Assembly (NCBI RefSeq): GCF_006345805.1
Contig: NW_021836845.1
Span: 1 to 37,461, forward strand
DNA length: 37,461 nt
Origin: Octopus sinensis
Lineage: Eukaryota
Direction of reading: 5' to 3'
The notes beneath the pieces were generated by a model. That model searched no databases. It saw only the letters and a list, made by a program, of their open reading frames with translations, and was not told the origin of the DNA. Shown here one piece after another: positions 2,690 through 34,150 of the stretch. Position numbers and translations under genes: made by a program. Every line of letters begins with the position of its first letter. Positions within the stretch are counted from its first letter, which is position 1.

Positions 2690-2845
2690 TAGTGGTGGGC
2701 ACAGCTAACCAAAAAGTTAGCTTCACTAAATGCTAATCCACGAACTAAAAAAGTTAGCTTTTCAAACACTAAAGCACTAAACAGGTAACAAAATTAGTGG
2801 AAGCTAATGCTGATAACCTCTTACTTTTATCATATGAATTTAGTT

Positions 2846-4394
2846 TCATGTTTGGTTTTTTGGTTCTAAAACCCTTAAAAACAGACCTAGATAGCTGAAA
2901 TTTTCATGTAGTTTAGACATAGTACATTCCAAAAGGGTATAGCATGCCAAGATCAGATGATGATCAAGGTGTACTACTCTGGCTGGGAGCTTCTCCATTG
3001 CCTCAACATGATGCTGATTGCCTTTCATAAACATCAGCCTCTCAAAGTTACCATCTGACAGGGTGACTCTCTTGGCCTTCAAAATATCTTTACCTATAGA
3101 GAACAGGTGCTCAACTGCAGCACTGGATGGGATGGTGGTGTTATACTTGGTGAACAGGTAAATCAAGACCTGCTCACCCAAAAAGGCGACTTCAGTCAGG
3201 ACTTCCTTTGAGATGGCCTCCAGCAAGTCTTCATCAAGTTCTGCTCCTTGGATTTCAGTGACCTGTGGCTTCTGCTCTCCTGAAACTGAGTGATGTTGCT
3301 GAAGAAATCATCTTCATTCTCATTGCTGGTGGTGCTGCTGCCCTCCTCATTGGTTTCCATTAGGGCTGTCTCTACAACGGTCTCCATAGTGTTCGTTACC
3401 CTGCCAACCTGGCTATTTTTATACTGCTCCAGCCAGAATAGGCAAAACTCAGAGTGGAAGGTAGCAGTTGGCTGGCATTCCAAGTTTTCTAAGAGGGACC
3501 CAAACCTCTTCATGATACCTGTCAGTATTGCATCTACCAGAGGACTGAAGTACAGAAGATGTTTGAAATTGGCTTCCTTCAACTTCATAATGGTAGCTGC
3601 TACAGTTAGCAGAAGGCTTCCGAGATAAGCCTGGTCCTCCTTTTGTCCAAGGCCTTGGCAACATTAGACATCACCTGGGCATACTGTCAGGAAGCCGACA
3701 TCAGAAGTCTGCAGCTTCAGTTGTGTCATCAACCTGTGGACAGCTCCCCTATTCTTCTCCAGCAGTTTGTTGAGGACAACAACAGAGTCATAGATAGAGT
3801 TCAATCTGGTACTGTTGAGGACCACCAGCCTCCTCTTCAGCATGTCTAGAATGTTATCTGTTGCCACTGTGCCTTGGACATGGCCTTCCTGTAGGTCAAC
3901 TTGAACAAAGCACTGTCAAGAGCCTTGTCGGCATCCACACTGGCTACCAAGTTGAGGTATGAGCTGCACACTTCATCTGCACTGGCAGGTTTTAGACTCA
4001 GGTTACTGGACTTGTCAAGGATGGCATCAACAGAGATGTACTCAACTTCGTCCACATCTCCAGCCAGGGATCCACGTCCAGGTTCACATCCTTGATGCCC
4101 TCCATGTCAGGATCAGCTGCAGCCTTAGGAATGTCTGACAAGAGTTCAACTTCTGTACCAAACTGCATAAATGCCTTAAGGGCTTTTACCATTGTCCATC
4201 ATGATCCTGGTCTGCTTGTCTTGCAGATGGAACTTGTAATGGGTGTTCACCATAGCCTGGGTGAAAACATCAAAGGTGTGATGTCCTCTGAGCCGAGAGC
4301 AGGCCAGGACGGCATGTTGTCTCATGCAGGTCTTGGGGTCCAGCCAGTATGCTGTCATCCCCAGGTAGGACCTGTTGTGGGCCAACCAACAGTC
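2846..4394 (-). pseudogene. Frameshifted hAT transposase coding region
   Basis: ORF fragments 4176-4427, 3998-4192, 3846-4055, 3664-3867, 3196-3588 and 2846-3226 are collinear pieces of one hAT transposase. Confidence 0.85.
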
Positions 4395-4446
4395 CTTTAA
4401 ATTATACAGAGAGAAAGAGACAAACATAGACAGAGAGACAGATATG

Positions 4447-4830
4447 TAAAATAATCAAAGTGGCTAGCAGCAATTTAAAACCAATAAGGAAATAATTCAC
4501 TGTCACTAAGAGTGACAAGAGTGCAGTGAGCACCAGCATTGCTAGAAATAGGAGTTGTAGGCTCCTTAGCCATAAAAGCACATGGTCTCTTTGTATTGAC
4601 TGTAAGCGAGATGCATTAGATTAGCATGCTAATTTCATATAAGAAATTAATACTCATCAGTAATGCTCACTCTATCACAGCTGGTAGAGACTAACTCACC
4701 CAGTCAATATTATGGAGAATGCCACTGGAATTGGTGACTGATTTCACAAAATGGCAATGTGAAAATTATAAAATAATCAAGGTGGCTAACAGCAATTTAA
4801 AACCAACGAGGAAATAATTTACTGTGACTA
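4447..4830. repeat. 62-bp direct repeats (4447-4508, 4769-4830) bounding a 322-bp unit that carries a hammerhead motif
   Basis: Manual alignment gives 56/62 identical positions, with a period of 322 bp. Confidence 0.9.
4613..4666 (-). ncRNA. Type I hammerhead ribozyme motif
   Basis: Minus strand reads GCATTA-CUGAUGA-GUAU(UAAUUUCUU)AUAU-GAAA-UUAGCAUGCUAA-UC-UAAUGC. Stem I is 6 perfect bp, both core motifs are intact, stem III is palindromic, and the cleavage triplet is AUC. Activity is untested. Confidence 0.85.
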
Positions 4831-5806
4831 TTTATAAACTGATGCAGAGTATGATCAAGGCCTACTACAAAAAAAACAAAACAAACAAAAACAAAACTAG
4901 TCTCTCCTCCACATCTCCATGCAAGCTGCAATGGGTTTTGTGAGCACATGGTTTGTACAATTTTTGCTGGTAAGGAGGCAGAACATTTGATTGCAGTATC
5001 TTATAACCATATTTTGTTTATAGAAAGTACACACATTGCAGTTTAACATTTGTCATTAGGCTGTTCTAAATTCATGGAAATATTGCTTATAATTTAAAGT
5101 CTTGTTATTAAACTTTTTAAAATAGTAATACTATGCATTGGGGTGAGGGGATGACAAACCAAGATGAGTGATGGTTGGAATATGATAAGTTCAGAACTTA
5201 AGGTTTGTTTATTCGTTATTTCATTAAAGACTGCTGTTTTGGCTATGCAGACATGATCATGAGTGGAATATATATATTAGCTATTATACATTTTAGTACA
5301 TTAATTAAGAAAATAATTATTTAATAAATAAATAATTAAATTAAGAAAATATGAAGTACAGACTCCTCAACAAGCCCTTCATCCTCAGGTTGAAAAAAAA
5401 ACGTCTTCACCTTCCATAACAATAAGCGATAACTTGCTAATCTGATAACGTACACTGCTGTTGCTGATACTGTAAAACTATCTGTAATGTGACAACATTG
5501 TAAGTAAACACAACTCAAAAGTGCAGAATTACACATAACTGCTGAGTTAGCTGCTGTTGTGTCTTGTCATGTCTACATGTAGTCAGCCAAGAGCATGCTT
5601 GACAGACTCTTCAAGACACGGCCACAACAGATAGGAACAAATGTATGAATTTTGTTAGTGGACTTAAAGTTAGTGGAGCTAAATTTAGCAGAAGCTATTT
5701 GGTCCGCTAATGGTTTCCAAAGTTAGCAAAAACGCTAATCTGCTAAATGAAAAGTTAGCTTCACTAATTAGCCATTAGCGGATTAGCAGAACTGTACCCA
5801 CCACTT

Positions 5807-6235
5807 GGCCCCTCCCACAAATTGAAAAATACATTGTATGATGCCTGTGTACAAACAGCTATATTACATGAGTGTGAAATATGGGCTGTGAATGTGAAGG
5901 CTTAAAAGAAATGAAGCCAGCATGCTCCACTGGATGTGCAATGTCAGTGTATAATAAAGTAAAAGTATTTTGAGAGCAGAATTGGGTATAAGATGCATCA
6001 GATGAAGTGTACAAGAGAGAAGATTGTGCTGATGTGGGTATGTGATGCATATGGATGAAGACAACTGCATAAAGAAATGCTGATCTTTAAATGTTGAAGG
6101 AACCTGTGGAAGAGGAGAACAGAACAGAGTGGTGCGATATGATCTTCAGATATTGAGCCTCACAAAGGAGATGACAAAAGACCAAGATGATCGGCAATTT
6201 GTTGCACTTGAGATGACCTGTCCAGCTAAGTATAA
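5807..6235 (+). mobile_element. Degenerate RTE LINE, 3' part, resuming after the hAT insertion
   Basis: Sequence resumes GLS...LYDACV...ERNEASMLHWMCNVSV, collinear with 1839-2689. Confidence 0.85.
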
Positions 6236-6719
6236 TAAAGGCCCCACCAAAAAAACCCTACCCTCTATGATCTCTGTATGTCTTCAATTCATCAACTTGA
6301 TATTAGGTTCAGTTTGTAATTTTGTGATGGAAACTGTCACTGTTCTTGAGCCACAGGCTTGTCAACCAGTTTAAGACTACCACCTGGTCCATATAACACT
6401 ATGCTTTCATTTTATCCTGAAGCTTTCAGTTTTTCAAAAGCATTTACAACTTTCGGGCTGGGTTGTGTGAATTTCCAGCCAAGGGTTGGGTGTCAACGAA
6501 TTTGTTGAGTAACTCTTAGAGCCTGTAATACCAGTATAGTGGTGGTAATGCTAGATGTGCATATGTTGTAGCACCAATAAAGCAGTGCAAGGTTATTTAG
6601 TACACATGTGTTTGTTTATGCATGTTTTGACCTTGTTTTGATTAATCAGTCAGAATGTCTATTACATCTGAATATAAGACAATATGTCTTCACCCAGTTC
6701 AATTGTTTTGGCAGTGTGT

Positions 6720-9070
6720 AAACCATAAGACGTGTGGCCAGAGCCTCGTGGAAAGTAACCATAGCAAGGTTCATTCCACAGTTGAATTGGAACAGTCTAA
6801 AAGAGTGATAGGCATGAAGAGGACAAAGATTAAGTGGCCGAAAGCAAATGACGCAGTGAGTTATAAAAAATTTGACAACGAGGTAGCAAGAATGACCACC
6901 AAATTCAAAGGCAACAATGAACAAAAGCTCGAAAACTTGGCTAATACAATCTACCAGGAAAGAGAGAAAAGATTTGGACTGGAAACAACAAGGAAGGTAG
7001 AATCAACGGCAAAGAGCAGACCATCGAGGAGAGAAAGATGGATCGCAAAGATTCGAGAAGAGAAGAAAAACCTCAGAACCAGATGGAGGGATGCAAAGGA
7101 AGAGGAAAAAGAAGGGCTAAAGCAGCTTTATGAAGAGATAAAAAAAGAGGCATCGAGATCTACTAAGAAAACAAAGAAGGAAGAGCAGAAGAAAGGAGAG
7201 AGAAAAGAACTATCGTAGCTTTGTGAACAATCCCTATCAATATGCGAAACATCTATTTACTGAAAGTAAAAGTGGAAAATTAGATTGCACGAAAGAAGAG
7301 CTTGAACAACATCTGAAAGAGACATACAGTGACTCCGACAGAAATAAAGTACTCCCAGAAATGCACGGACTGAAGAAACCACCTGAACCAAGAGTACCAT
7401 TTGATTTGAATGACATCAAACGGAAGGAAATGGATGAGTTCATAAGAAAAGCAAGAGCAAAAAGTTCACCAGGGAACATTGGAGTGAGCTAAAAGGTATA
7501 TAAATATTGCCCGAAATTACGTTTGCAGCTGTTTGCACTGATAAGAGAAATGTGGAAGAAGAAAGATGTAGCAGAGCGATGGTGTATAACTGAAGGTATC
7601 TATCTACCTAAAGAAAAAGATGCAAAAACACTAGGACAATTTAGACCAATTTCATTATTAAATACTGATGGGAAAATCATGTTTGGAATTATTGCTAGAC
7701 GAATCATAAGATTCGTACAGCATAATGGGTACATTAATGAAGCAATCCAAAAAGCAGGAACCCCCAGAATCCCTGAGTGCATAGAACACACATTTGCCAT
7801 CTGGGAAGCCATCACCTATGCAAAACAAATGAAGAAAAACCTGTATATTGTTTGGCTAGATCTTGCCAATGCTTATGGATCTGTTCCGCATGCACTAATA
7901 AAATTAGCAATAGACTTCTTTTAGATTCCAAAAGATGTTCAATGAATGCTCATGTCCTACTAAGACAACCTGAGGATGAGGTTCACAGCAGGAAAGTTCA
8001 CAACAGAGTGGCAACGGCTTGAAATAGGTATTGCAGCCGGATGCACGATAACAGTCATCTTATTCGTGCTAGTCATGGAAATGTTACTTAGACCTACAAA
8101 CTGTGAGAAAGCTGTTACAAAGACACCATTAAGGGCTTTTATGGACGACGTTACTGTATTATCGGAAAGTAGAGAAGCAGCAGAAGCGGTTGGATGAACT
8201 GATAGGATGGGCAAGAATAAAATTCAAAGCCAAAAAATCTCGAAGCGTGGCTTTGGTGAAAGAAGAAGTGAAATTCAGGATAAGAGGTGAAGACATACCA
8301 ACAGTGAAAGAACAACCAGTAAAGAGTCTTAGCAGATGATAAGAAGCAAGGGAAAGAAACACACGAGTTAGTAGAATGAGGATTAAAGGCAATTGACAGA
8401 ACAACGCTGCCGAGAAAATTCAAATGTTGGATACTGCAATTTGGGCTGTACCCAAGGATAATGTGGCCATTGCAAATGTACGAAATAGCCTCGAGTAGAG
8501 TAGAAAGGATGGAACAAAGATGCAGTGTGTTTATCAGAAAATGGCTTGGTCTTCCAAAATCACTGAATACAACTGCACTATATGGAAAACCCATATTGCA
8601 ACTACCGATAACATCAATTGCTGAAGAATATAAGGCAAGGACAGTAATGATGCTACGGTATTCAAAAGATCAGAGCATCCGAGAAAACCCTCCAAAGGTA
8701 CGAACAGGGAGGAAATGGAAGGTGGAAGAGGCAGTAAACAGGGCGATTGGAAAACTAAGACATGCAGATATAGTCAGAGCGACGCAAAAAGCAAGAGCCA
8801 GCCTAGGGTCGCACAATTTCAGGCCATTTTGCAAGAGCAGTATAAAAGAGATGAAAGAGGAGGTGGTATATGAAGTGAGAAAGGAGGAAGAAGAAAGGTG
8901 AAATGTACATTTGGTGCAATGTAGTCAACAGGGACAGTGCCTGAGAAGATTTGTTTTTTTCTAGCTCAGAGCTGAGAAAACTAATAAGGAGAGTACAGGA
9001 GGCAGTCGAAAAAACCAGCTTCTATATATGGCTGAAGCGGGAAGACCAAAAATGGCTTAAAAGTCATAAC
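6720..9070 (+). mobile_element. Hero/NeSL-like (R2-group) non-LTR retrotransposon, decayed, with the CCHC/endonuclease region deleted
   Basis: Fragments IKWPK..D...FD, KARAKSSPG, EGIYLPKEK...FRPISLLN, WLDLANAYGSVPH, GIAAGCTITVILF, RAFMDDVT, WLGLP..L...ALYG..LQLP, RTGRKW and the terminal EAVEKTSFYIWLKR. Clade assignment is by motif recognition. Confidence 0.8.
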
Positions 9071-9549: not shown

Positions 9550-10337
9550 ATGGGGAGAAATTTCACACTGAAATGAGCTCTAGTATGTGAATATGAGACT
9601 GGGCTGTTGGGATCAAAACACAAGAGCCAGAAACTATACACTGCCAGTCAAATGCTTGATATATTGGATTAATTCAGTGAATTAGATACCAAAAATGATG
9701 CGAATTACCTAGATAGGGACTTAGCACCTGCTTCTGACAATGACAGACACAGTGTAGGAAATGAAGGTAGTGACAGCAAAAATGATTCAGATAATGAATC
9801 CATTGGTGCAGAAAAGGAACCTGGCACTACAGAATTGGTTGCCAACATTATCGACTTAGGTTCATTTGATGCTTCAAATTATGGGTCCAAAACATTCCTG
9901 ATAGCATAACTGATGAGTCTAAACCAATTTGAGTGTGTAAATATAAAATATATTTCTGGATGATCAATTCTGAGTAAACACCCAAACCAATCTGCATGCC
10001 ACACAGGATTGAGAAACAATCCCCAGTAAATGTTATTGTAAAAATTTCTAAGTTTTTACTGCTGAAGAAGCAAAGCCTTTACAGGCCTGTATCTTGCAAT
10101 GGAAAGTAGCGTGATCAAACCATAGTATCAGAGGGCAAAAACTTTTTTGTTACACACAGTTTCCATCACAGAATTAGAAAATGAACCATAGACAAATCAG
10201 ATAAGATATATAAAGTTAGGCCACTACTCAACACACTGCTGCATAAATTCCATGAGCATCACAACCCAAAGCAGCACCTTAGCCTAGCTGAAGAGATGAT
10301 ACTGATCAAAACAGGTTGGTCATCAGTATATAAAAGA
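9550..10337 (+). mobile_element. piggyBac-like transposase remnant, N-terminal part
   Basis: Near 10195-10335 the sequence reads DKIYKVRPLLNTLLHKFHEHHNPKQHLSLAEEMILIK, resembling the piggyBac K(V/I)RP....LS(I/V)DE.M motif. The 5' boundary is uncertain and no TTAA/TIR was found. Confidence 0.7.
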
Positions 10338-12942
10338 CATCATCATCATCATCATTGTTTAGCGTCCGCTTTCCATGCTAGCATGGGTTGGACGGTTCAA
10401 CTGGGGTATGGGAAGCCAGAAGGCTGCACCAGGCCCAGTTTGATCTGGCAATGTTTCTACGGCTGGATGCCCTTCCTAACACCAACCACTCCATGAGTGT
10501 AGTGGGTGCTTTTTACGTGCCACCGGCACAGGTGCCAGACGAGTCTGGCAAACGGCCACGATCGGATGGTGCTTTTTATGTGCCACTGGCACGGGGGCCA
10601 GGCAAGGCTGGCAACGGCCACGGACGGATGGTGCTTTTTACGTGCCACCGGCACAGGTGCCAGGTGAGGCTGGCAATGGCCACGAATGGATGGTGCTTTC
10701 TACATGCCACCGGCACGAGGCCAGTCGTGGCGGCGCTGGCAACGGCCACGTTCGGATGGTTCTGTTATGTGCCACCGGCACTGGTAACTCAGCTGCAATT
10801 TTCATTGATCGATTTCGATTCTGATTCTGATTCTCACTTGCCTCAACAGGTCTTCACAAGTAGAGTTTTGTGTCCCAAGAAGGGAAGGTATGCATAAGTG
10901 GGCTGGCTACATCCCATGTAGAAGGCCACAGGTTATGGTCTCGCTTGTCCTGCCAGGTCTTCTCACGCACAACATACTTCCAGAGGTCTCGGTCTCTAGT
11001 CATTTCCTCAGTGAGACCTAAAGTTCGAAGGTCGTGCTTCACCACCTCGTCCCAGGTTTTCCTGGGTCTGCCTCTTCCACAGGTTCCCTCAACCGCAAGG
11101 GTGTGGCACTTTTTCACACAACTATCTTCATCCATTCTCGCCACATGCCCATACCAGCGCAATTGTCTCTCTTGCACACCACATCTGATGCTTCTTAGGT
11201 CCAGCTTTTCTCTCAAGGTACTTACACTCTGTCGAGTATGAATACTGACATTACACATCCATCAGAGCATACTGGCTTCATTTCTTGCGAGCTTACGCAT
11301 ATCCTCAGCAGTCACGGTCCATGTTTCACTACCATGTAACATGGCTGTTCGTACACACGCGTCATACAGTCTGCCTTTTACTCTGAGCGAGAGGCCTTTT
11401 GTCACCAGCAGAGGTAAGAGCTCTCTGAACTTTGTCCAAGCTATTCTTACTCTAGCAGTTACACTTTCAGCACACCCACCCCCGCTGCTGACTTGGTCAC
11501 CTAGGTAACGGAAGTTATCAACTATTTCTAGTTTTTCTCCCTGGAAAGTGACAGAAGTTGGTCTCAGAGCATTTTCAGTGTTTATTGTTCCTGAGCATCT
11601 GCCACATACAAAAACCATCTTCCTAGTTAGCCTTCCAAAGGCTACACTTACACTTGGTGCATCTTATAGAGTTTCTGCTTACACCTTTTCTACCGATCGA
11701 GCAGGGCCATCTACCTGAAGGCGTTTGTGATTTGTCTACCTTCCTACTTATTAGGACTTTGGTTTTAGCTAGATTGACTCTAAGGCCCTTCGATTCTAAT
11801 CCTTGCTTCCACACCTGAAACTTCTCCTCAAGTTCTGATAGTGACTCAGCAATTAGAGCAAGGTCATCAGCATAGAGGAGCTCCCAAGGGCATCCTGTCT
11901 TGAATTTCTCCATTATTGCCTGGAGGATTATGATAAATAGAAGGGGGCTGAGGACTGAGCCTTGGTGGACCCCTACCTCTACCTGGAATTCTTCACTGTA
12001 CTCGTTGCCAACCCTCACCTTACTAGCAGCGTCCCTGTACATGGCTCGCACAGCTCTCACTAATCATTCATCTATCCCTAGTTTCCTCATTGACCACCAG
12101 ATAAGGGATCGGGGAACCCTGTCGAAGGCTTTCTCCATGTCAACAAAAGCCAGGTACAGGGGCTTATCTTTGGCTAGGTATTTCTCCTGCAGGAATATAG
12201 CATCAGTGGTACTTTTCCCTGACACAAACCCAAACTGCATCTCATCTGAACTAACTCTCTCTCTAATTAGTTGGGCTATGACCCTCGCCATAACCTTCAT
12301 CACCTGATCCAACAGCTTGATACCTCTGTAATTATTTGTATCTAGGGCGTCACCTTTACCTTTGTAGCAGTTGACTATTATGCTGCTACACCAGTCATTG
12401 GGTATGACTCCTTCGTGTATCACCTGATTAACTATACGGGTGACTAGGCTATAGCCGACACTACCAGATATTTTGAGCATCTCTGCAGTGATTCCTGATG
12501 GGCCTGGGGCTTTCCCTGTCTTCATGCTTTTAATTGCCTTAACTACCAAGGAACTGTCAACTCGGATAGCTGGTCTCTCTGTTGGGTCAACATTCGGCAG
12601 ACTCTCTTTCTCCCATTCATTTTCTTTATTCAGCAACCTTTCATAGTGGCGTCTCCAAACATCTCTCTTTGCATCCTCATTTAGCGCAAGTGAACCATCT
12701 TCCATGCGAACACACTTCTCTCCTACCACATCACAATTCTCTCTCACACACTGTCTTGCAACGCGAAACACCTCCAGTCTTTGGTCCTCACGGCGCAGAA
12801 CATTGGCAAATTTTTTCTTATCTGCTTCCCCTCTGGCTAGATAGACCTGTCTCCTAGTTTCCCTTTTGGCAGTCTGATACAATTCCCTGCTACCACCATT
12901 CTTCCAGTCCTTCCAAGTCTGTCTCTTTTCTCTAATAGCCCT
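10338..12942 (-). mobile_element. RTE LINE, 5'-truncated, with RT and a complete 3' UTR ending in (GAT)n
   Basis: ORFs 12064-13095, 11623-12060, 11262-11618 and 10854-11258 (KAPGPSGI, FVDMEKAFDRVP, GVHQGSVLSPLLF, YADD, FRYLG, RQLRWYGHV). (cat)n tail at 10338. Confidence 0.93.
10505..10780. repeat. About five tandem ~62-bp units in the RTE 3' UTR
   Basis: Recurring ggtgctttt(t)acgtgccaccggcac at about 10505, 10568, 10630, 10691 and 10758. Confidence 0.85.
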
Positions 12943-13976: not shown

Positions 13977-15619
13977 TACTGGACCAGGTAATGAAAATTA
14001 CAGAGAGTTAGTCTTGATGAGATGCAGTTTGGTTTTGTGCTTTGGAGAAGCACAACTGATGCTATATTCCTGGTAAGGCAAGTTTGTACGTATTTAGTCA
14101 AAAATAAACCTCTGTACTTGGTTTTTGTTGATATGGAGAAAGTCCTTGACTGGGTCCCCTGTTCCCTTATCTGGTGGTCAATTTGAAAGCTAGGGATAGA
14201 TGAGTAGTTGGTGAGACGTTGCAAGTCATGTACTGGGATGCTGCCAGTAAGGTGTTGGTTGGCAATGAGTTTAGCAAGTAGGACTTCACCAAGAAACAGT
14301 TCTCAGCCCCCTCTTGTTTATCATAGCCCTCCATCCCATAAAAGAAATTCAAGACTGGCTATCCTTGGGAGCTCCTCTACATTGATGACCTTGTTCTTAT
14401 AGCTGACCTAGAGAAAATATTTCAGGTGTGGAAGCAAGATCTGGAATCAAAGGACCTTTGAGTTGATTTAGCAAAGACCAAAGCCCTAGTAAGTAGGAAA
14501 GCAGGCAAATCACAAGTCCCTTCAGCAAGATGGCCCTGCTTGATATGTAAGAAGGGCGTTGGTAGAGACTCCAAACATTGTACCCAGTGTAAGCTTTGGA
14601 CACATAAGAGGTGTAGCGGTATCACAAGAAGGTTAACATAAAAAATAGTCTTTGTGTGTGGCAAATGTGTGGCTACAATAAGCACTAAAACAACACAGAG
14701 AATAGACTTCCTCAAGTGCTCGGAGGGATCCCTAAAAGTAGTAGATAACTTCTGCTACTTAAACAACCAAGTTAGCTGTGGAGGAGGAAGTTCTGAAAGC
14801 ATAGTTGCTAGAATAGGAATGGGCTGGGCAAAGTTCAGAGAGCTTCTACGTTTGTTGGTAACTAAGGGCCTCTCCATTAGAGTGAAAGGCAGATTGTATG
14901 ATGCCTGTGTACATACAACTATGCTACATGGTAGTGAAACATAGGCTGTAATTATGGAGGACTTATGAAGGCCTGAAAGAAATGAAGCCAGCATGCTCTG
15001 CTGGATGGGTAATGTCAGTGTGCATGCACAACAGAGTGTAAATGATTTAAGAGGAAAACTAGGTATAACAGGCATCAGATGTTGTGCACAAGAGAGGAGA
15101 CTGTGCTGGTATGGTCATCCGATGCATATGGATAAGGATAGCTGCGTAAAGAAGTGCTGATCTCTACTTGTGGAAAGGGTAGATCTAGGAAAACACAGGA
15201 CAAAGTGGTGAGAAATCTTCAGATACTGGACTTCACTGAGAAGATAACAAGGGACTGGAACTTGTGGCAATTTGCTGTACATGAGAAGTCATGTCAAGCT
15301 AAGTAAAATCATGGCCATCCATACATACATACAAGCATATCCTTTATGGCCAAGCCCTAACTCTCTCTCCCAGCTGAGGGAGTCTTTGTCTTGCAGGCAC
15401 CAGTGTCACATAAAATATACTCGCACCAGTGCCACCTAGGATGCACTTATGCTGGTGGTATGTAAAAAAGCACCCAGCACACTCTGTAAAGTAGTTGGTG
15501 TTAGGAAGGGCATCCAGCTATAGAAACCATGCCAAAGACAGACAATTGGAGTCTGGCCAGCTTCTGTTAAACCATCAAACCCATGCCCCTATGGAAAATG
15601 GATGTTAAACAATGATGAT
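13977..15619 (+). mobile_element. Degenerate RTE LINE, 5'-truncated, with 3' UTR and (GAT)n tail
   Basis: Remnants of LDQVMK, MQFGFV, ELLY.DD and KFRELL.LLVTKGLSIRVKGRLYDACV. The 3' UTR is similar to the other copies. Confidence 0.88.
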
Positions 15620-15620
15620 G

Positions 15621-15666
<46 letters not shown>

Positions 15667-15710
15667 ATAAATATACACTCATGTACACATACACATGTTT
15701 ATATATATAC
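15620..15710. repeat. (TA)n-rich microsatellite
   Basis: Read directly from the sequence. Confidence 0.9.
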
Positions 15711-17262
15711 TCTCATGCTTAAATATACTATTCCTGTCCAGACACTCCTCTCCTATCTCTTGCCTTGCCTGTATGTATGTATGTTTTTAATGTATGTATC
15801 ATATATAGGCACACATATATGTAGCACAAAACTGCCACTTATCAAAACGAAAAAAATTCTTTTAAAAGTTAATTACGAAATAGGTAAAATATAATGAAAT
15901 TTAAAGAATGGATTCTTTAAATTTCTCCTTACAAAACTTACAAATAAATTTTCATTGAAAAATTATTTAAAATATCCCTATTTTATTTTAACAAGTTATT
16001 TTGTATACAATAAGAGATGCCATGTATGTATCTATATATCTCTCCACCTGTCTGTCTATCTAACTGACTAACTGAATGTCTGACTGACCAACCAACTGAC
16101 TGACCTAATGTCAGTGGTGGCAGAATCTGTGGCATTTATTTTTACCTCTTTACATTCAAAACTATTGCAGTGGAGTTGACTTTACCCCTCATCTCTTCTG
16201 GGTTTAAGAAAATAATGGTATGGAATTAGTTGCTGCCATTTTGTTGCCAGCTATTTGACAACCATTTTATCAATAGAAAACATATTTTGATGTCAACTCC
16301 TGTAACATGTTTTGGAAATACCACATTTGATTAATTCATTATTACTCATAGTTACAACTGGTAAACTTTCTTAAGTACTAACCACTATCCATGTTTTCAC
16401 AACTAAAAATAGCTTCATGTATTCATGATCTCTATAATTTTCTGTGGAACATTGATTGTTGGGTCATGTCCATCTAGGATGCATTCAAATATGTGTTTTT
16501 ACTTTCTGTATTTTTTACATGACCACCTGTTAATTTCCATTGTGTGTCAAGTTCACATTGTAATTAATGAAGGGCTATTAACTTCATAATTTTTTCTTTC
16601 CCAAATGCCAAAATTTAACTCAATTTATGCTTGCTTTAATCAAACACATAGAGGAATCTATGATATGCATATTTTTGTCTACCTAGCCATCATATGTGAA
16701 TAAAAGAAGGGTGTTTAGTTTAAAATTTATAAAATAAAAATATAACAGAATAGTAGGGTTGTGGAAGTGCTGATGTAGCAAATGCAGCTTGGATGCTACC
16801 TGTTGATAGGAACACTGATACTATCTGTAACCCATCTGGATGTGGTTTAGTTTTTCAGTAGTTGAATAGTTCAATAATTTCAACTTTTGGATTTAAAGAT
16901 ATGCAGAATAAAATGCAGTGTATCATATAAAAATGTTCATAGCCTCAAAACATTCACCACCCAGTTGTGGCACCAAAACAATGACCAAAATGTATTGACC
17001 CATAAATAAGTATCCTCACTACACTGGACTTAATTCAATTGACTGACTTCACTTTATCCCTAAATGAAATTGTCCAAGAGACATGAAAGCTATGTATATT
17101 ATTAACCCATAAGTAATGAGAAGCATAGTTGACTCTGATGTGATTAGAACCTAAAAATATATAGTAATGAAGCTAAATTATTGTGGACGTCCATCATTTC
17201 TGCCACTTCACTACTTCCATCAAAAAATGTTGATATCTACTTGTTTCACCTTTTTTGTTAAG

Positions 17263-18954: not shown

Positions 18955-19213
18955 TTGCAGCGTTGAAGGTGTTTATAAGCCATTTAAGAAACACGCAAAA
19001 ACCGTTAGATTCACTTCAACATTTAAATTTAATTTGTCAAAATATTTTCATCGCTTTGAGACCGCGACCTGTTAGCACGATATTTTTGTCAGTGAACAGG
19101 TCGCGGTCTGAAAGCGACGAAAATATTTTGGCAAATTAAATTTAAATGTTGAAGTGAATGTAACGGTTTTTGTGTGTTTCTTAAATGGCTTACAAACACC
19201 TTCCACGCTGCAA
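18955..19213. repeat. Long inverted repeat (MITE-like foldback) with 119-bp arms and a 21-nt spacer
   Basis: Arms at 18955-19073 and 19095-19213; 112/119 complementary by manual alignment. Confidence 0.95.
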
Positions 19214-19512: not shown

Positions 19513-19579
19513 ACATTCTCTGCTTTGGTCTTATGTTCAAGGCATGAGAAAGCTTGAGTTTACATGAGAAGGCCTAACA

Positions 19580-19845
19580 GACCTGGTAGAAACAGCAGCC
19601 AAATCTCCCTCAAATCACACCTTACTGTCTTATGTATGTATATATATATGAGCCAATGAGGGGGACCTCTACATGGTAGCTAGACCTGGTAGAAATAGCA
19701 GCCAAATTTCCCCCAAATCACACCTTACTGTCTTATCTATGTATATATGTATGTATGAGCCTATGAGGGAGACCCCTACATGGCAGCTAGACATGGTAGA
19801 AATAGCAGCCAAATCTCCCTCAAATCACACCTTACTGTCTTATCT
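19580..19845. repeat. 2.5 tandem copies of a 103-107-bp unit
   Basis: Units start at 19580, 19683 and 19790 (gac(c/a)tggtagaaa(c/t)agcagccaaat...caaatcacaccttactgtcttat). Confidence 0.9.
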
Positions 19846-23170: not shown

Positions 23171-23240
23171 GAGGAGGATGAATGCCTTAGATTACACTGT
23201 TATCACCCTTGATAGGTTGTCATGAGCAAGTAAGCATGTA

Positions 23241-24440
23241 TCATCATCATCATTGCTTAACGTCTGATTTCCATGCTGACATGGGTTGGACGATTTGACA
23301 TGGAGCTGAATAGCAGGGAGCTGTCCTGACTCCAGTTGTGTTGTAGCATAGTTTCTATGGCTGGATGGCTTTTCAAACGTCAACCACTTAACAAAGTGTG
23401 CTAGATGTTTATTACATGCCACTGTGTGTTTATGTAGCATCAGCATGGGTACATTTATGCAGCATTGGCTTAAATGCTTTTTATGTGGCACTAGCACCTG
23501 AAAGATGACCCTGTATGTATGGAAGTCAACAATTTTACTTACTTTGATGTGTTTTATTAAGTACAACAAATTGCTACGTCTCCTGGTCCCTTGTTATTTA
23601 TTCAATGAGGCTCAGTCGCTCAACACTTCTTTATGCAGTTGTCCTCATCCATACACATCACATAACGAAACCAGTGCTGTCTTCTCTCTTGCACACAACA
23701 TCTGATGCCTGTTATATCCAGTTTTCCTCTTAAGTCATTTACACTCTGTTGTGCATGTACACTGACATTACCCATCCAGTGGAGCATGCTGGCTTCATTT
23801 CTTTCAAGCTTTAGCAAGTCCTCCATAGTCGAAGCCCATGTTTCACTATCATGTAATATAGCTGTACATACACAGGCATCATACAATCTACCTTTCTCTG
23901 TGAGGAAGAGCTCCTTAGTTATGAACAAATGTAGAAGCTCTCTGAACTTTGCCCAGCCTGTTCTTATTCTAGCAACCACACTTTCAGAACTCCCTCCACC
24001 ACTGCTAACTTGTTCTCCTTGGTAACAGAAACTATCTACTACTTCTAATGACCCCTCTCCCTGCTCCCAAGCATTTGAAGGAGTGTATTGTCAGCACATT
24101 TTTAGTGCTCATTGTGATACATTTGCCACTCATTGTGATACATTTGCCACACATGAAGACTATATTCTCTATTAACCTTGCTGTGATACTGCTATACCTC
24201 TTATGTGTCCAAAGCTTGCACTGGGTACAATGTATGGAGTTTCTACTAACAGCCTTCTTACATATCAAGCAGAGCCATCTCACTGAAGTGACTTGTGAGT
24301 TATCTGTTTTCATAGTTACTAGGACTTTGGTTTTTGGTAAATTAGCTCTAAGGCCCTTAGATTCCAGGCCTTGTTTCCATACCTGAAATTTCTTCTCTAG
24401 TAGTGAGTGATTCAGTTATAAGACAGTGAGTCTTGAATTC
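23241..24440 (-). mobile_element. Degenerate RTE LINE, 5'-truncated, with 3' UTR and (GAT)n tail
   Basis: ORFs 24032-24313 and 23620-23979 (ARIRTGWAKFRELL...GRLYDACV); (tca)n at 23241. Confidence 0.88.
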
Positions 24441-27196: not shown

Positions 27197-30100
27197 TCAT
27201 CATCATCATCATCATCGTTTAACGTCCGTTTTCCGCGCTAGCATGGGTTGGATGGTTCGACCGGGGTCTGGGAAGCCAGGGGCTGCACCAGGCTCCAGTC
27301 TGATCTGGCAGTGTTTCTACAGCTGGATGCCCTTCCTAACGCCAACCACTCCACGAGTGTAGTGGGTGCTTTTTATGTGCCACCGGCACAGGTATCACAA
27401 CTACTATTTCCATTGATATTTATTTCGATGTTCATGTACTTGACTCGATAGGTCTCCTCAAGCACAGCGGGATGTTCTGAAATCCAAGGTACTTTGAATG
27501 GGCAGGGGCTATGCGGAACTGGTGCAGGAAGCAGCCCGGGTCTTTGCAGTCACAGCATATCTCCAGAGATCTCAGTCCTTCATCATTGCCTCTGTGAGGC
27601 CCAACGCTCTGAGGTCATGCTTGACTACCTCATCCCATGTCTTCCTGGGTCTACTTCTCGCCCTGATACCTTCAATTGTTTGGGAGCGGCACTTCTTCAC
27701 ACATCTCTCTTCATCCATCTGCAGTACATGACATCTGATGCTTCTTATGTCCAGCAATTCTCTCAGGGTGCTTACACTCTGTCGTGTATGCACACTGACA
27801 TTACACATCCAGCGGATCATGCTAGCTTCATTTCTTTCAAGTCTACGCATGTCCTCTGCAGTCACAGCCTATGTTTCACTACCGTGAAGCATGGCAGTTC
27901 GTACACATGCATCATACAATCTACCTTTCACTCTGAGCGAGAGACCCTTTGTCGCCAGTAGGAGCTTTCTAAACTTTGCCCAGGCTATTCGTATTCTAGT
28001 GGTGACACTCTCTGAGCATCCACCTCCACTACTAACTTGGTCCCCCAGGTAGCGGAAACTATCAACTACTTCTAGTTTCTCCCCCTGGAGTGTGATGGAA
28101 TCTGTTTTCTGAGTATCTGTGGTGTCTGTTGTCCCTGTGCATCTGCCGCACATGAAAGCTATCTTATCAGTTAATTTCCCTTTGATGTTGCTACACCTCT
28201 TATGCATCCATAGCTTACACTGGGTACATCTTATGGAGTTTGTACCTACACCTTTCCTACAGATCGAGCAGGGCTACCTGCCTGAGGGTGTGTGTGCTGA
28301 GTTCGCCTTTCTGCTTACTATAACTTTGGTCTTTGCTACATTTACTCTAATCCTTGCTTCCACGCCCGAAATTTCTTTTCTAGTTCCGGTAGTGATTCTG
28401 CTATGAGAGCCAGGTCATCAGCATAGAGGAGCTCCCAGGGACAACCTGTTTTGAATTCCTCTGTTATTGCCTGGAGGACTATGATGAATAAAAAGGGACT
28501 GAGCCTTGGTGTACACCTACTTCTACCCGGAATTCTTCACTATATTCGTTGCCAATCCTAACCTTGCTGACAGCCTCTCTGTATGGGGTCTGTACAGCCC
28601 TTATTAGCCATTCGTTAATCTCTAGTTTCCGCATCGACCACCAGATAAGGGATTGGGGGACCCTGTCAAAGGCTTTCTCCAAGTCCACAAAAGCTATGTA
28701 GAGGGGTTTATCTTTAGCCAGGTACTTCTCCTGCAGTTGTCGGACCAGGAATATAGCATCAGTGGTGCTTCTACCAGCACAAAACCGAACTGCATCTCAT
28801 CTAAGCAAATTCTCTCCCTAATGAGATGGGTTATGACCCTCTCTGTGACCTTCATCACCTGATCCAACAGTTTAATACCCCTGTAGATATTTGTATCTAG
28901 AGCATCACCCTTACCCTTGTAGCAGTTGACTATGGTGCTGCTACGCCAGTCATTGGGTATGACTCCATTATGAACTACCTGGTTTACAATACGGGTGACT
29001 AGGCCATAGCCCACATAACCAGCTGTTTTAAGCATCTCAGCAGTGATTCTTGATGGGCCGGGGGCTTTACCTGGTTTCATACGCTTAATTGCCTTAACTA
29101 CAAGGGAGCTGTCTATTCGGATAGCTGGTCCCTCTACTGGGTCAACATTTGGCAGGCTCTCCTCCTCCCATTCATTCTCCACATTCAGCAGTCTTTCGTA
29201 ATGGCTTCTCCAAGCGTCTTTCTTTTCACCATCATTAAAAGCAAGTGCCCCATCATCCATGCGGACACATTTCTCTCCTGTAACATCACTATTTTCTCTC
29301 ACACACTGTCTAGCAATCCGAAATACCTCAGTTCTTTGGTCCTCACGTCGCTGGACATTGGCAAACTTCTTCTTTTCTGCTACATCTTTGGCTATGTATA
29401 CCTGCTGCCCAGCCTCCCTTTTGGCTACCTGGTACAGTTCCCTGCTACCCCCATCCCTCCAGGCTTTCCAGGCCTGTTTCTTTGCACTAATGGCTTTGTC
29501 TACTGTACTATTCCACCACCACGTAACTCTAGGTTTGGAAGGGACTTTGCACCATCCACAGACTTGGTCTGTGGCACTCAGCAAGCTGTCTCGTAGGAAT
29601 TTCCAGCTACCTTCTATGTCCGACGTCTGTAGCTCCTCCTCCCTCTCATCAAATTTCTTGATGAGGATGTCCCTAAATCTCTGACCATGTGAAGGGTTCT
29701 TTAGCTTCCAAATCCTTCTTTTCTGGATTGGTCTGATTCTTGGAATCCTTCTGGCCTCAAGCCTAAAGTCACTAATGATTAGCTTATGCTGAGGGGTACA
29801 TTCTTCACCCGGGAGGGTCTTTGTATTTAAGAGCAACCCTGCATCCCGCTGTCTGGTGAGGATGAAGTCTATTTGGCTAGCGGAGTCTCCTGACTGATAG
29901 GTTATAAGGTGGCAGTCAGGCTTCCTGAAGTTAGTGTTGCAGATTAAAAGGTTACATGCATCACAGAATTCCTGTAATCTAGTTCCCTCATCATTTCTGG
30001 TGCCAATACCATGGCCACCGTGTACCCCAGTGAAGATACCCGATTCCTGCCCAACATGCCCATTAAAGTCTCCACCCACAAAGATGAGGTCCTTGCCACT

Positions 30101-30358
30101 CGTCTTTGAGGTAGCCTGTAGAAGGGTATCATAAAAGTGGTCCTTCTGATCATTTGGTAGCCCCGCATGTGGGGCATAGGCGGAGATAATCGTAGCTGTG
30201 CTGTTCTGTAGGACTAACCTGAGCTTAAGCACTATCGCAAACCCTGACAACCTCTTTGACCTTATCCACCCATTTCTCCGCAAGGAGAATGCCTACACCC
30301 CCTACACCATCCATGTTACCTTGCCAGAAGACTTTATACCTATGTGCCTTGCCTGGTG
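27197..30358 (-). mobile_element. Near-full-length RTE LINE (APE endonuclease plus RT), frameshifted
   Basis: ORF 28694-30283 (ISAYAPH, GDFNGHVG, SQIDFIL, QHKL, then RT motifs) with downstream fragments 28479-28688, 28119-28406, 27869-28207 and 27572-27865. (cat)n tail at 27197. Confidence 0.95.
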
Positions 30359-30399
<41 letters not shown>

Positions 30400-30719
30400 A
30401 AAATATACAAATATACATACATATATATACATAAGCAAATCGTACATACTATTCACATGCGCAAAATACATCAAAGAACATCATTGAACAATATATTACA
30501 TTACATTGGGTATATCATGCGTCATATAGTAAAGTAAATACATTCTAATGTATATAGACTACCACGTTTAACAGTACCAACAGTATTATTGCTTTAACGA
30601 TAATCCTCAACAGATCATACATACTATATTCATGTTTACTAACATAACAAAAATTCACGATACAAGGTTCGAAATATAAATATTCACACATATACATATA
30701 TATATGTGCACAAACAAAG

Positions 30720-32690: not shown

Positions 32691-33279
32691 TCTTAACAAT
32701 TTTAAAGAACGTAATGTTCATGTCTTCATAAACTGTGGTATACTTTCTCTTGATACAAATAATACTTAGTATAAAATACCCTTTGAAATAGATACAAATT
32801 GTTGTTATGAGCTTTTTTACTTTATTATATTTAAGAGTACAAAATTGTTAAGGGTTATAGGCATATGGTTTTTGTATATCTGTATAAATGTATAATATAT
32901 GTATTTGTGTATGAATGTGTTTATATATTTTGATATAAGTATTTATTTGTGTGTACATATTTGTACTTTTTTTATATACTGGTACTTGATTGTAAATATA
33001 TCTTTATATTTATGTATATTGATATGTATTTACTTTTGCCTTTTAGTATCGTAGTTATGCACAAAGTATGAGTCAAAGTACTAAACATATTGAGGTCACT
33101 ATTGGATTTGTATATATTTAGATGCATATGTATATATATATGTGTTTATTTATTCATGTAGGTTTATTTGTGTGCATGCATATGGTAGTTTTAAGTATTA
33201 TTTGATGTTATCTTTCTTGTATGTTAGATATTATGTATAGACTTCAGTACACTTTTGTGTATGTGATGTTTGTACTGGT

Positions 33280-33488
33280 TTGTATGTAGGGGTATATATG
33301 TGTATATATCTGTTATGTATGTGTGTGTATATATTATATTATATATATATACACACAGATATATACACATATATGTATATATATATATATGTATATATAT
33401 ATCCAACCCCATCTCATTTTATAATATATATATATATATATTATATAATATATATGTATATATATATTATTATGTATAATATATAATG

Positions 33489-33520
<32 letters not shown>

Positions 33521-33586
33521 GTATATGTATATATATATATGTATATAATGTATATATATATATGTATATGTATATATATATATATG

Positions 33587-33617
<31 letters not shown>

Positions 33618-33959
33618 GTATATCTATATATGTATATATATGTATATATATATATGGTATATATATGTATATATATATATGTATATATATGTGATATATA
33701 TATAGTATATGTATATATATATATATATGTATTATATATATGTATATATGTATATATGTATATATATATATATGTATAATATATGTATATATGTATATTA
33801 TTATATATATGTATATATGTATATATGTATATATGTATATAAGTATATATGTTATATGTATATTGTATATATATATGTATATATGTATAATATATAATAT
33901 ATATATGTATATAGCATAATTATATGTATATATAATGTATATATATATGTATATATGTA

Positions 33960-34003
<44 letters not shown>

Positions 34004-34150
34004 AATTATATATCCCCCTCATTTTAATAATATATATATATAGTATGTATATATTATAGATATATATATTTTATATATATATGTATATATTATATATATA
34101 TGTATATATATATATGTATATATATGTATATATATATATATGTATATGAT
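33280..34150. repeat. ~870-bp (TA)n/(TATG)n low-complexity tract
   Basis: Read directly from the sequence. Confidence 0.95.

Follow-up and report, generated by a model that had tools for sequence, protein, structure and literature searches.

Hammerhead ribozymes in animal genomes have been tied in the literature to retroelements, namely retrozymes, Penelope-like elements and satellite repeats. The metazoan non-long terminal repeat (non-LTR) retrozymes, whose hosts include molluscs, are tandem, low-GC and self-paired units of 170-400 nucleotides (nt) bearing type I hammerheads, and four validated retrozyme hammerheads have a perfectly palindromic helix III, namely ACAGUACUGU, ACGCGCGU, ACACGUGU and ACAUGU (PMC7229834). 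Penelope-like insertions form partial head-to-tail tandems (PMC8557442), and amniotes are known to have hammerheads within introns that play roles in mRNA biogenesis (PMC7229834). In the present study, we analysed a stretch of 37,461 nt from Octopus sinensis (contig NW_021836845.1 of assembly GCF_006345805.1; the whole stretch is hereafter called the window), in which a hammerhead-consensus motif of type I topology lies on the minus strand inside a decayed hAT DNA transposon. A full-text literature search returned no report of a hammerhead inside a hAT or other DNA transposon, and no published report of a retrozyme-like element or hammerhead in cephalopods. We propose, with a probability of about 0.5, that the motif is the relic of a type I hammerhead of the retrozyme/Penelope kind, which is carried as filler in a non-autonomous hAT element and is represented here by a weak or inactive copy.

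The minus-strand RNA, read directly from 4666 to 4613, has the order GCAUUA-CUGAUGA-GUAU-UAAUUUCUU-AUAU-GAA-AUUAGCAUGCUAAU-C-UAAUGC (Table 1). The core elements C3-U-G-A-N-G-A9, G12-A-A14, A15.1-U16.1 (A4633-U4620) and H17 (C4619) were found in this order, surrounded by three helices of 6, 4 and 5 bp of which helix I is open, as in type I hammerheads. Both the direct reading and a descriptor scan confirmed the core and the three helices in type I order, and the core CUGAUGA/GAAAU/AUC agrees with the descriptor used in the field (CUGANGA/GAAAY/RUH), with perfect helices. Helix III consists of 5 bp and a self-complementary CAUG loop. At the base of helix II, the 10.1/11.1 pair is G4653-U4637 in place of the canonical G10.1-C11.1, and all other pairs of this helix are A-U. 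The extension of helix I appears in the minimum free energy (MFE) structure of a 72-nt fold, and a 141-nt fold including the outer stem reached -39.9 kcal/mol (z -3.07). The letters and coordinates of the motif, its helix I extension and the predicted cleavage site at 4619/4618 had been given in an earlier note on this DNA, and all of them agreed with our direct reading.

The chance expectation of such a motif was estimated with 400 dinucleotide-preserving shuffles of the 37.5-kb window, scanned on both strands with a descriptor of the type I core (CUGANGA, GAA, A15.1-U16.1 and H17) that required minimum helix lengths of 4/3/3 bp and permitted G-U pairs. The descriptor matched three times across the 400 shuffles, and the observed 6/4/5-bp quality was attained in none of them. 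Extrapolation gave a chance probability of roughly 3-6e-5 per window (about 1e-4 or less), equal to a few matches per 2.7-Gb genome; on the scale of one window the match greatly exceeds chance, which it does not when a whole genome is scanned. Across 197 kb comprising the window and the fetched loci, the site in the window and its homologue in a paralogous element (L001, described below) were the sole matches. We also built a covariance model from the four validated ribozymes (PMC7229834 supplement), for which the E-values are roughly calibrated, and the window site was its top match in 195 kb (18.9 bits, E~0.01), with L001 at 15.8 bits and a runner-up with a broken core at 15.5 bits.

The paralogous hAT copy L001, from Octopus vulgaris (OX597829.1), contains the same filler (~87% identity) and was aligned to the window from 5046 to 4037 at ~80-87%. 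It keeps every base of the core, and 51 of the 54 motif positions are identical. One difference is a C to U in helix I that retains pairing with G; another is a C for U at 11.1 (...AUAC-GAAA), which creates the canonical G10.1-C11.1 pair; the third is a C for U at 15.3, in helix III, and a fourth difference lies in loop II. The helix I extension is retained with G-C replacing G-U, and the outer pairing, as read from the sequence, is retained as UAUUGACAGGAG/CUCCUGUCAAUA. The suggestion in the earlier note that the G-U at 10.1/11.1 is a product of CpG decay is therefore plausible, since L001 has G-C there, and comparison of the two copies indicates that the ancestral pair was probably G-C.

A palindromic element resembling a miniature inverted-repeat transposable element (MITE) was also noticed within (TA)n at L001 8554-8714, at L001 2666-2857 and at 14309-14491 of L005, another O. 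vulgaris hAT locus. Its copy at L001 8639-8676 contains a minimal hammerhead-like motif with helices of 4/3/3 bp, and CUGAUGA is unique to this copy, the other copies having CCGAUGA or CCGACGA. We rejected it as a second hammerhead and consider it accidental, as it results from one copy-specific C-to-T change in an unrelated palindromic MITE.

The placement of the motif within a hAT element, in the sense orientation of the transposase, was verified by terminal inverted repeats (TIRs) matching at 13/15 positions, a target-site duplication (TSD) matching at 7/8 and a transposase match at E 3.8e-186. Thus TIRs, an 8-bp TSD and a hAT transposase were all found for 2690-5806. The subterminal motif GCTAA/TTAGC occurs 5 times in 2700-2810 and 10 times in 5678-5790, versus about 2 per kb in the window. 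Minus-strand open reading frame (ORF) fragments from 4427 to 2846 represent a frameshifted hAT transposase, whose best match is a 735-aa protein of Homarus americanus (67% identity); fragments from O. vulgaris and Octopus bimaculoides also match, and ZBED1_RNase-like domains are precomputed for the transposase homologues. The motif falls between the remnants of exon 1 and exon 2, and ~215 nt separate it from the exon 2 acceptor downstream.

Further loci were fetched through transposase homologues (L002-L005), and L006 and L007 are loci from other organisms. L004 (ENA ERZ26222911), with exon 1 at 7759-8418, an intron of 1573 nt and exon 2 at 9992-11518, looks autonomous and intact, its two exons encoding 220 + 505 aa. 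No hammerhead was found in the L004 intron, and its similarity to the octopus copies is limited to its last ~75 nt. The filler that contains the motif stands in place of exon 1 codons ~19-229 (~121-229 in L001) plus most of the intron. The link with a cut-and-paste transposon therefore looks like capture and not like an intrinsic property, because the motif sits in filler that has no counterpart in L004; the idea of the ribozyme as a feature of the hAT element was not supported, as this lineage-specific filler is not hAT-ancestral sequence. We also considered whether 5300-4841 could be a decayed 3' part of exon 1, and rejected it, as its alignment to L004 exon 1 was no better than that of shuffles. 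The octamer GTAGGCCT shared with the 5' splice site of L004 may be a coincidence.

Two direct repeats with the motif between them subdivide the filler, and the same arrangement is present in L001. The downstream repeat together with 4509-4768 makes one 322-nt unit (GC 0.37), so that the block 4447-4830 is a 1.19-mer. The homology of L001 to L004 picks up just past the end of the downstream repeat, marking the edge of the lineage-specific block. When circularised, the unit folded at -81.5 kcal/mol (z -3.5 versus shuffles, compared with z +0.4 to -1.8 for five control segments), with a paired fraction of 0.62 versus 0.59 in shuffles. Its size, low GC and type I hammerhead agree with the description of retrozymes (170-400 nt; PMC7229834), and only about 1% of the sampled octopus DNA falls in repeat-bounded units of such size. 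The palindromic helix III, the architecture of helix I and the low-GC, structured, partially tandem unit of ~322 nt are resemblances to validated metazoan hammerheads that the descriptor does not require, and by analogy they favour a genuine lineage.

These observations suggest the following scenario. The motif would be a metazoan type I hammerhead of the kind borne by non-LTR retrozymes and Penelope-like retroelements, and part of a structured, AT-rich and partly tandem unit of ~322 nt. The unit may have turned into filler DNA in an internally deleted hAT element before this hAT subfamily spread in an octopus lineage, so that the hammerhead would be a passenger of the hAT element, outside hAT biology. 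If minus-strand RNA is made, the three-way junction would be expected to cleave after C17, yielding a 2',3'-cyclic phosphate and a 5'-OH, likely as a double hammerhead formed via the 14-nt palindromic helix III. The anatomy of the sequence, the limits of the hAT element, the nature of the segment as filler, the G-C pair of L001 and the energetics were observed or computed here; both the retroelement origin of the motif and any cleavage, past or present, are what we infer from them.

Several lines of evidence, concerning copies, covariance models and folding, weigh against a relic hammerhead. Two copies are known, those of the window and L001, and both derive from one ancestral event. The hAT copies L002, L003 and L005 of O. 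vulgaris are without the segment, through truncation or replacement, and no copy of the 322-nt unit outside hAT was found in the ~195 kb of fetched loci. Protein searches with the translated ORFs of the filler returned nothing, and exact and gapped DNA patterns gave 0 matches in metagenome and viral contigs. As regards conservation in other copies, the lack of which the earlier note had named as part of a refutation, the core is intact in L001; with two copies compared, the 51/54 identity of the motif is no better than that of the surrounding filler (~87-90%), and there are two pairing-compatible changes (C-G to U-G and G-U to G-C) and zero compensatory ones. A C for U at 15.3 in L001 breaks one pair of helix III. 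The unit also lacks the dimeric or higher tandem form of retrozymes, as the window has 1.19 units and one hammerhead, and L001 likewise has one hammerhead; a single complete unit with a single hammerhead could not release a circle at this locus.

In the Rfam searches, no family matched the window at the gathering score, and Hammerhead_1, _3, _II, HH9 and HH10 gave nothing even at E<=10 when 501 or 90 bases around the site were searched. The term "near-canonical" in the earlier note was thus an overstatement, as the check with Hammerhead_1 (RF00163) and the hammerhead clan gave no match. RAGATH-1-hammerhead (RF03152) scored 11.7 bits in the window and 13.4 bits in L001, versus a gathering score of 56.3, and in the alignment to its model, helix I, CUGAUGAG, (C)GAAA, helix III and UC all fell at the very places proposed for the candidate. 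For the model built from the validated ribozymes, the margin over the best noise match was just 3.4 bits, and E~0.01 per 195 kb implies more than 100 such matches per genome.

To interpret the folding energies, we used as a calibration set the four constructs assayed for cleavage in the supplement of PMC7229834, and computed folds for three of them under a nearest-neighbour model, which leaves out tertiary contacts and dimer formation. The hammerhead fold and the MFE were -11.6 and -15.2 kcal/mol for coral Amil224 (gap 3.6, helix II -5.8), -5.7 and -13.1 kcal/mol for mussel Mg353 (gap 7.4, helix II -1.9), and -6.0 and -8.3 kcal/mol for axolotl Ax353 (gap 2.3). For the candidate in the window they were -1.8 and -14.2 kcal/mol (gap 12.4, helix II +2.2), and for L001 +2.1 and -8.5 kcal/mol (gap 10.6, helix II +0.9). 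With C restored at 11.1 in the window sequence, the values were -4.0 versus -13.5 kcal/mol, and the gap was still 9.5. The gap of 12.4 kcal/mol thus lies outside the 2.3-7.4 kcal/mol of the validated ribozymes, and in this model the energetics of helix II and of the active fold are the weakest among the ribozymes compared. The competing fold is a rod of 21 bp that hides G12-A14 by pairing GAAAUUA with UAAUUUC of loop II. Such a fold alone is not disqualifying, because the MFE structure of mussel Mg353, a validated ribozyme, is likewise rod-like and lies 7.4 kcal/mol below its active fold. Owing to the G-U at 10.1/11.1, the AU-only helix II and the strong competing fold, the copy in the window is probably weak or inactive. 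As had been proposed, the palindromic helix III permits a dimeric form; its 14-bp duplex was computed at -17.8 kcal/mol versus -0.4 kcal/mol for the hairpin, and the double hammerhead is therefore the more credible active form under the model.

A chance origin, in which AU-rich and palindrome-rich filler happens to spell the core between stems of unrelated origin and never cleaved, is possible if on balance doubtful. A few matches of equal quality would be expected per 2.7-Gb genome from the shuffles, and this explanation accommodates a best 54-nt fold that is a simple rod with GAAA sequestered and helix I merely its base, a helix II of four weak pairs with positive free energy, the lack of an Rfam hammerhead match and a conservation uniform with the flanks. 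The MITE motif of L001, having arisen by a single C-to-T change, indicates that hammerhead-like motifs arise accidentally in palindromic repeats. Moreover, the hAT subterminal motif GCTAA occurs in helix III as an inverted pair, ATGCUAAUC is common to helix III and the 3' subterminal region, and a palindrome made of paired transposase-binding motifs is possible; these GCTAA and 9-mer coincidences, however, are not statistically significant alone, being estimated at 0.1-0.2 by chance. On the other hand, the probability per window is low, the ancestral 11.1 was probably C, giving the canonical G-C, and the palindromic helix III, the 6-bp helix I with its bulge and extension, and the ~322-nt unit match validated hammerheads beyond the descriptor. 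If the motif did arise by chance, it is a caution that a sequence can satisfy every descriptor criterion yet have no stable active fold.

We consider it improbable that the motif is a functional ribozyme intrinsic to the hAT subfamily, acting in the transposase pre-mRNA to cut unspliced transcripts and so limit transposase. Its sense orientation, its position between the exon remnants ~215 nt upstream of the exon 2 acceptor, its presence in two hAT copies and the precedent of amniote intronic hammerheads in mRNA biogenesis (PMC7229834) would suit such a role, but the 1573-nt intron of L004 has neither a hammerhead nor similarity to the segment, L002, L003 and L005 are without it, and neither a conservation peak nor strong energetics was observed. 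Both carrier copies are deletion derivatives without exon 1 codons 121-229 or more, so there would be no transposase to regulate. It is quite improbable, likewise, that an active and selected hammerhead, alone or as a double hammerhead, cuts sense transcripts of the hAT subfamily between the exon remnants; if true, this would provide the first functional coupling of a self-cleaving ribozyme with a DNA transposon of the cut-and-paste type. Another sense structured RNA, either an intron-encoded box C/D small nucleolar RNA (snoRNA)-like molecule or a microRNA (miRNA)-like hairpin derived from an inverted repeat, is very unlikely. The top Rfam scores at the site do belong to C/D snoRNA models (snoMe28S-Gm1083 17.9, snoR26 13.9, SNORD113 13.7 and SNORD59 12.2 bits), because a terminal stem and UGAUGA are present, and the 72-nt hairpin is stable (-20 kcal/mol, z -2.9); but these 12-18 bits are far below the gathering scores of 36-48 bits, no miRNA family in Rfam matched at the site, and the host is a dead transposon copy. 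A box C/D snoRNA was rejected, even though the terminal stem and (C)UGAUGA are there, since in both copies CUAA stands where box D requires CUGA, so that the GA needed for a kink-turn is missing.

Returning to a captured relic of a retroelement hammerhead, which we prefer, its reality would mean that cut-and-paste transposons can take up retroelement units bearing a ribozyme as filler, and that these units then spread passively. A family of retrozyme-like elements in cephalopods would also be suggested. The motif would then be another type I hammerhead of the kind tied to retroelements, and its carrier would be the unusual part. Whichever explanation holds, the biological weight of the finding is modest, because the element is dead and this one copy is probably inactive.

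Table 1. Coordinates of the features of the motif, its carrier element and the host locus in the window.
Feature	Position	Strand	Remarks
Hammerhead-consensus motif, type I topology	4613-4666	minus	54 nt; read directly and by descriptor scan
Helix I	4666-4661 / 4618-4613	minus	GCAUUA / UAAUGC; 6 bp, perfect
Core CUGAUGA	4660-4654	minus	
Helix II	4653-4650 / 4640-4637	minus	GUAU / AUAU; 4 bp
Loop II	4649-4641	minus	UAAUUUCUU; 9 nt
Core GAA	4636-4634	minus	
Helix III	4633-4620	minus	AUUAGCAUGCUAAU; perfect 14-nt palindrome
C17	4619	minus	predicted scissile bond between 4619 and 4618
Extended helix I	4672-4667 / 4609-4604	minus	GAGUGA / UCGCUU, across the 3-nt AUC bulge 4612-4610
Outer 9-bp stem	4701-4709 / 4594-4602	minus	UAUUGACUG / CAGUCAAUA; at 4594-4709, encloses the motif in a long structured hairpin domain
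Direct repeat, upstream copy (DR1)	4769-4830	minus	62 nt; 90% identical to DR2
Direct repeat, downstream copy (DR2)	4447-4508	minus	62 nt; 322 nt from DR1
Lineage-specific filler	4447-5345	minus	~900 nt; without counterpart in the intact relative L004
Non-autonomous, decayed hAT element	2690-5806	minus	TIRs, TSD, transposase remnants
TIRs	2690-2704 and 5792-5806		TAGTGGTGGGCACAG and AAGTGGTGGGTACAG (reverse complement of 5792-5806); 13/15
8-bp TSD	2682-2689 and 5807-5814		GGCCTCTC and partner GGCCCCTC; 7/8
Transposase exon 1 remnant	5363-5417	minus	first ~18 codons
Transposase exon 2 remnant	2990-4397	minus	codons ~229-728; several frameshifts and stops
SLC1 (EAAT) transporter exon-like stretch	770-880	plus	opposite strand to the motif

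With regard to the host locus, the plus-strand stretch at 770-880 scored 16.1 bits with Pfam SDF (E 0.006, under the cut-off of 27.9) and matched EAAT3 (PDB) residues 51-85 (E 0.0013), which bears out the assignment of the motif as antisense to an SLC1 gene. SLC1 being on the opposite strand, host transcription would yield the non-catalytic complement. The location in a host intron is plausible in that one SLC1 exon lies upstream; the other side of this claim found no backing, as no further SLC1 exon was found in the window.

The hAT family appeared close across distant animals. Transposase identity to the Homarus americanus protein is 67-84%, related transposases are also present in toadfish, Xiphophorus and Poecilia, and exon 2 DNA is ~80% identical between the octopus copies and the intact L004; this sequence similarity suggests horizontal transfer. 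At 4406-4442, a short low-complexity tract of the ACAGAGAG type separates the downstream direct repeat from the exon 2 acceptor, and a long (CT)n tract is found in a comparable region of the L004 intron.

Other repeats were recorded in the window. Fragments of retroelements bearing reverse transcriptase (RT) are located at 6655-8901 (plus), 11262-12060 (minus), 14400-15160, 23620-24400 and 27657-28750; of five ORFs that were scanned, two gave a Pfam RVT_1 match, none of the fragments checked looks Penelope-like, and some fragments, in both orientations, are mutually 72-85% similar. An inverted repeat of 229 nt (223-451 / 10339-10567) has copies that are 91% complementary and lie 9.9 kb apart, with related pieces at 23239-23388 and 27295-27393; it is a dispersed family encoding a recurring "MDGSTGV.EARRLHQAQ" pseudo-ORF. 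An AT-rich block at 33000-34150 (GC 0.15) is a degenerate (TA)n/(TATG)n microsatellite, with smaller AT-rich blocks at 440-720, 15600-15720 and 30350-30450. The regions 18955-19213 and 19528-19844 contain a near-perfect hairpin, with arms of 119 nt (94% complementary) and a spacer of 21 nt, adjoining a three-copy tandem repeat of 107 nt.

Among the known systems, the candidate is like the amniote intronic hammerheads HH9 and HH10 in being single, non-tandem and sense, in non-coding sequence between exons. HH9 and HH10 are ultraconserved across species and located in host genes, whereas the candidate lies in a transposon copy that has decayed, and its conservation does not exceed that of the flanks. 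With the pseudo-LTR hammerheads of Penelope-like elements (Cervera and de la Pena, 2014; Craig et al., 2021, PMC8557442), it has in common the type I topology and a partial tandem of the repeat-body-repeat kind, together with microsatellite-like sequence at its 3' junction (4406-4442). Unlike the minimal hammerheads of those elements, the candidate is situated in the unique and not the repeated part, and its helix III is long. No Penelope RT or GIY-YIG gene was found near the motif, and the fragments 7523-7924 and 11623-12060, considered as a nearby Penelope-like RT, were rejected, as they match generic Pfam RVT_1 alone and look like long interspersed nuclear elements. Compared with the retrozymes coral Amil224, mussel Mg353 and axolotl Ax353/Ax330 (Cervera and de la Pena, 2020, PMC7229834), the candidate differs in its AU-only helix II with a G-U base, in loop II (9 nt versus 5 nt), in helix III (14 nt versus 6-10 nt) and in the larger gap to the active fold (12.4 versus 2.3-7.4 kcal/mol), and also in having 1.19 units and one ribozyme, with no tandem array, inside a DNA transposon. 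Like these retrozymes, it has type I topology with the core CUGAUGA/GAAAY/RUH, a helix I of 6 bp resuming beyond an internal loop, a helix II of 4 bp and a palindromic helix III, embedded in a low-GC unit of ~300 nt, putatively self-paired, in a mollusc host.

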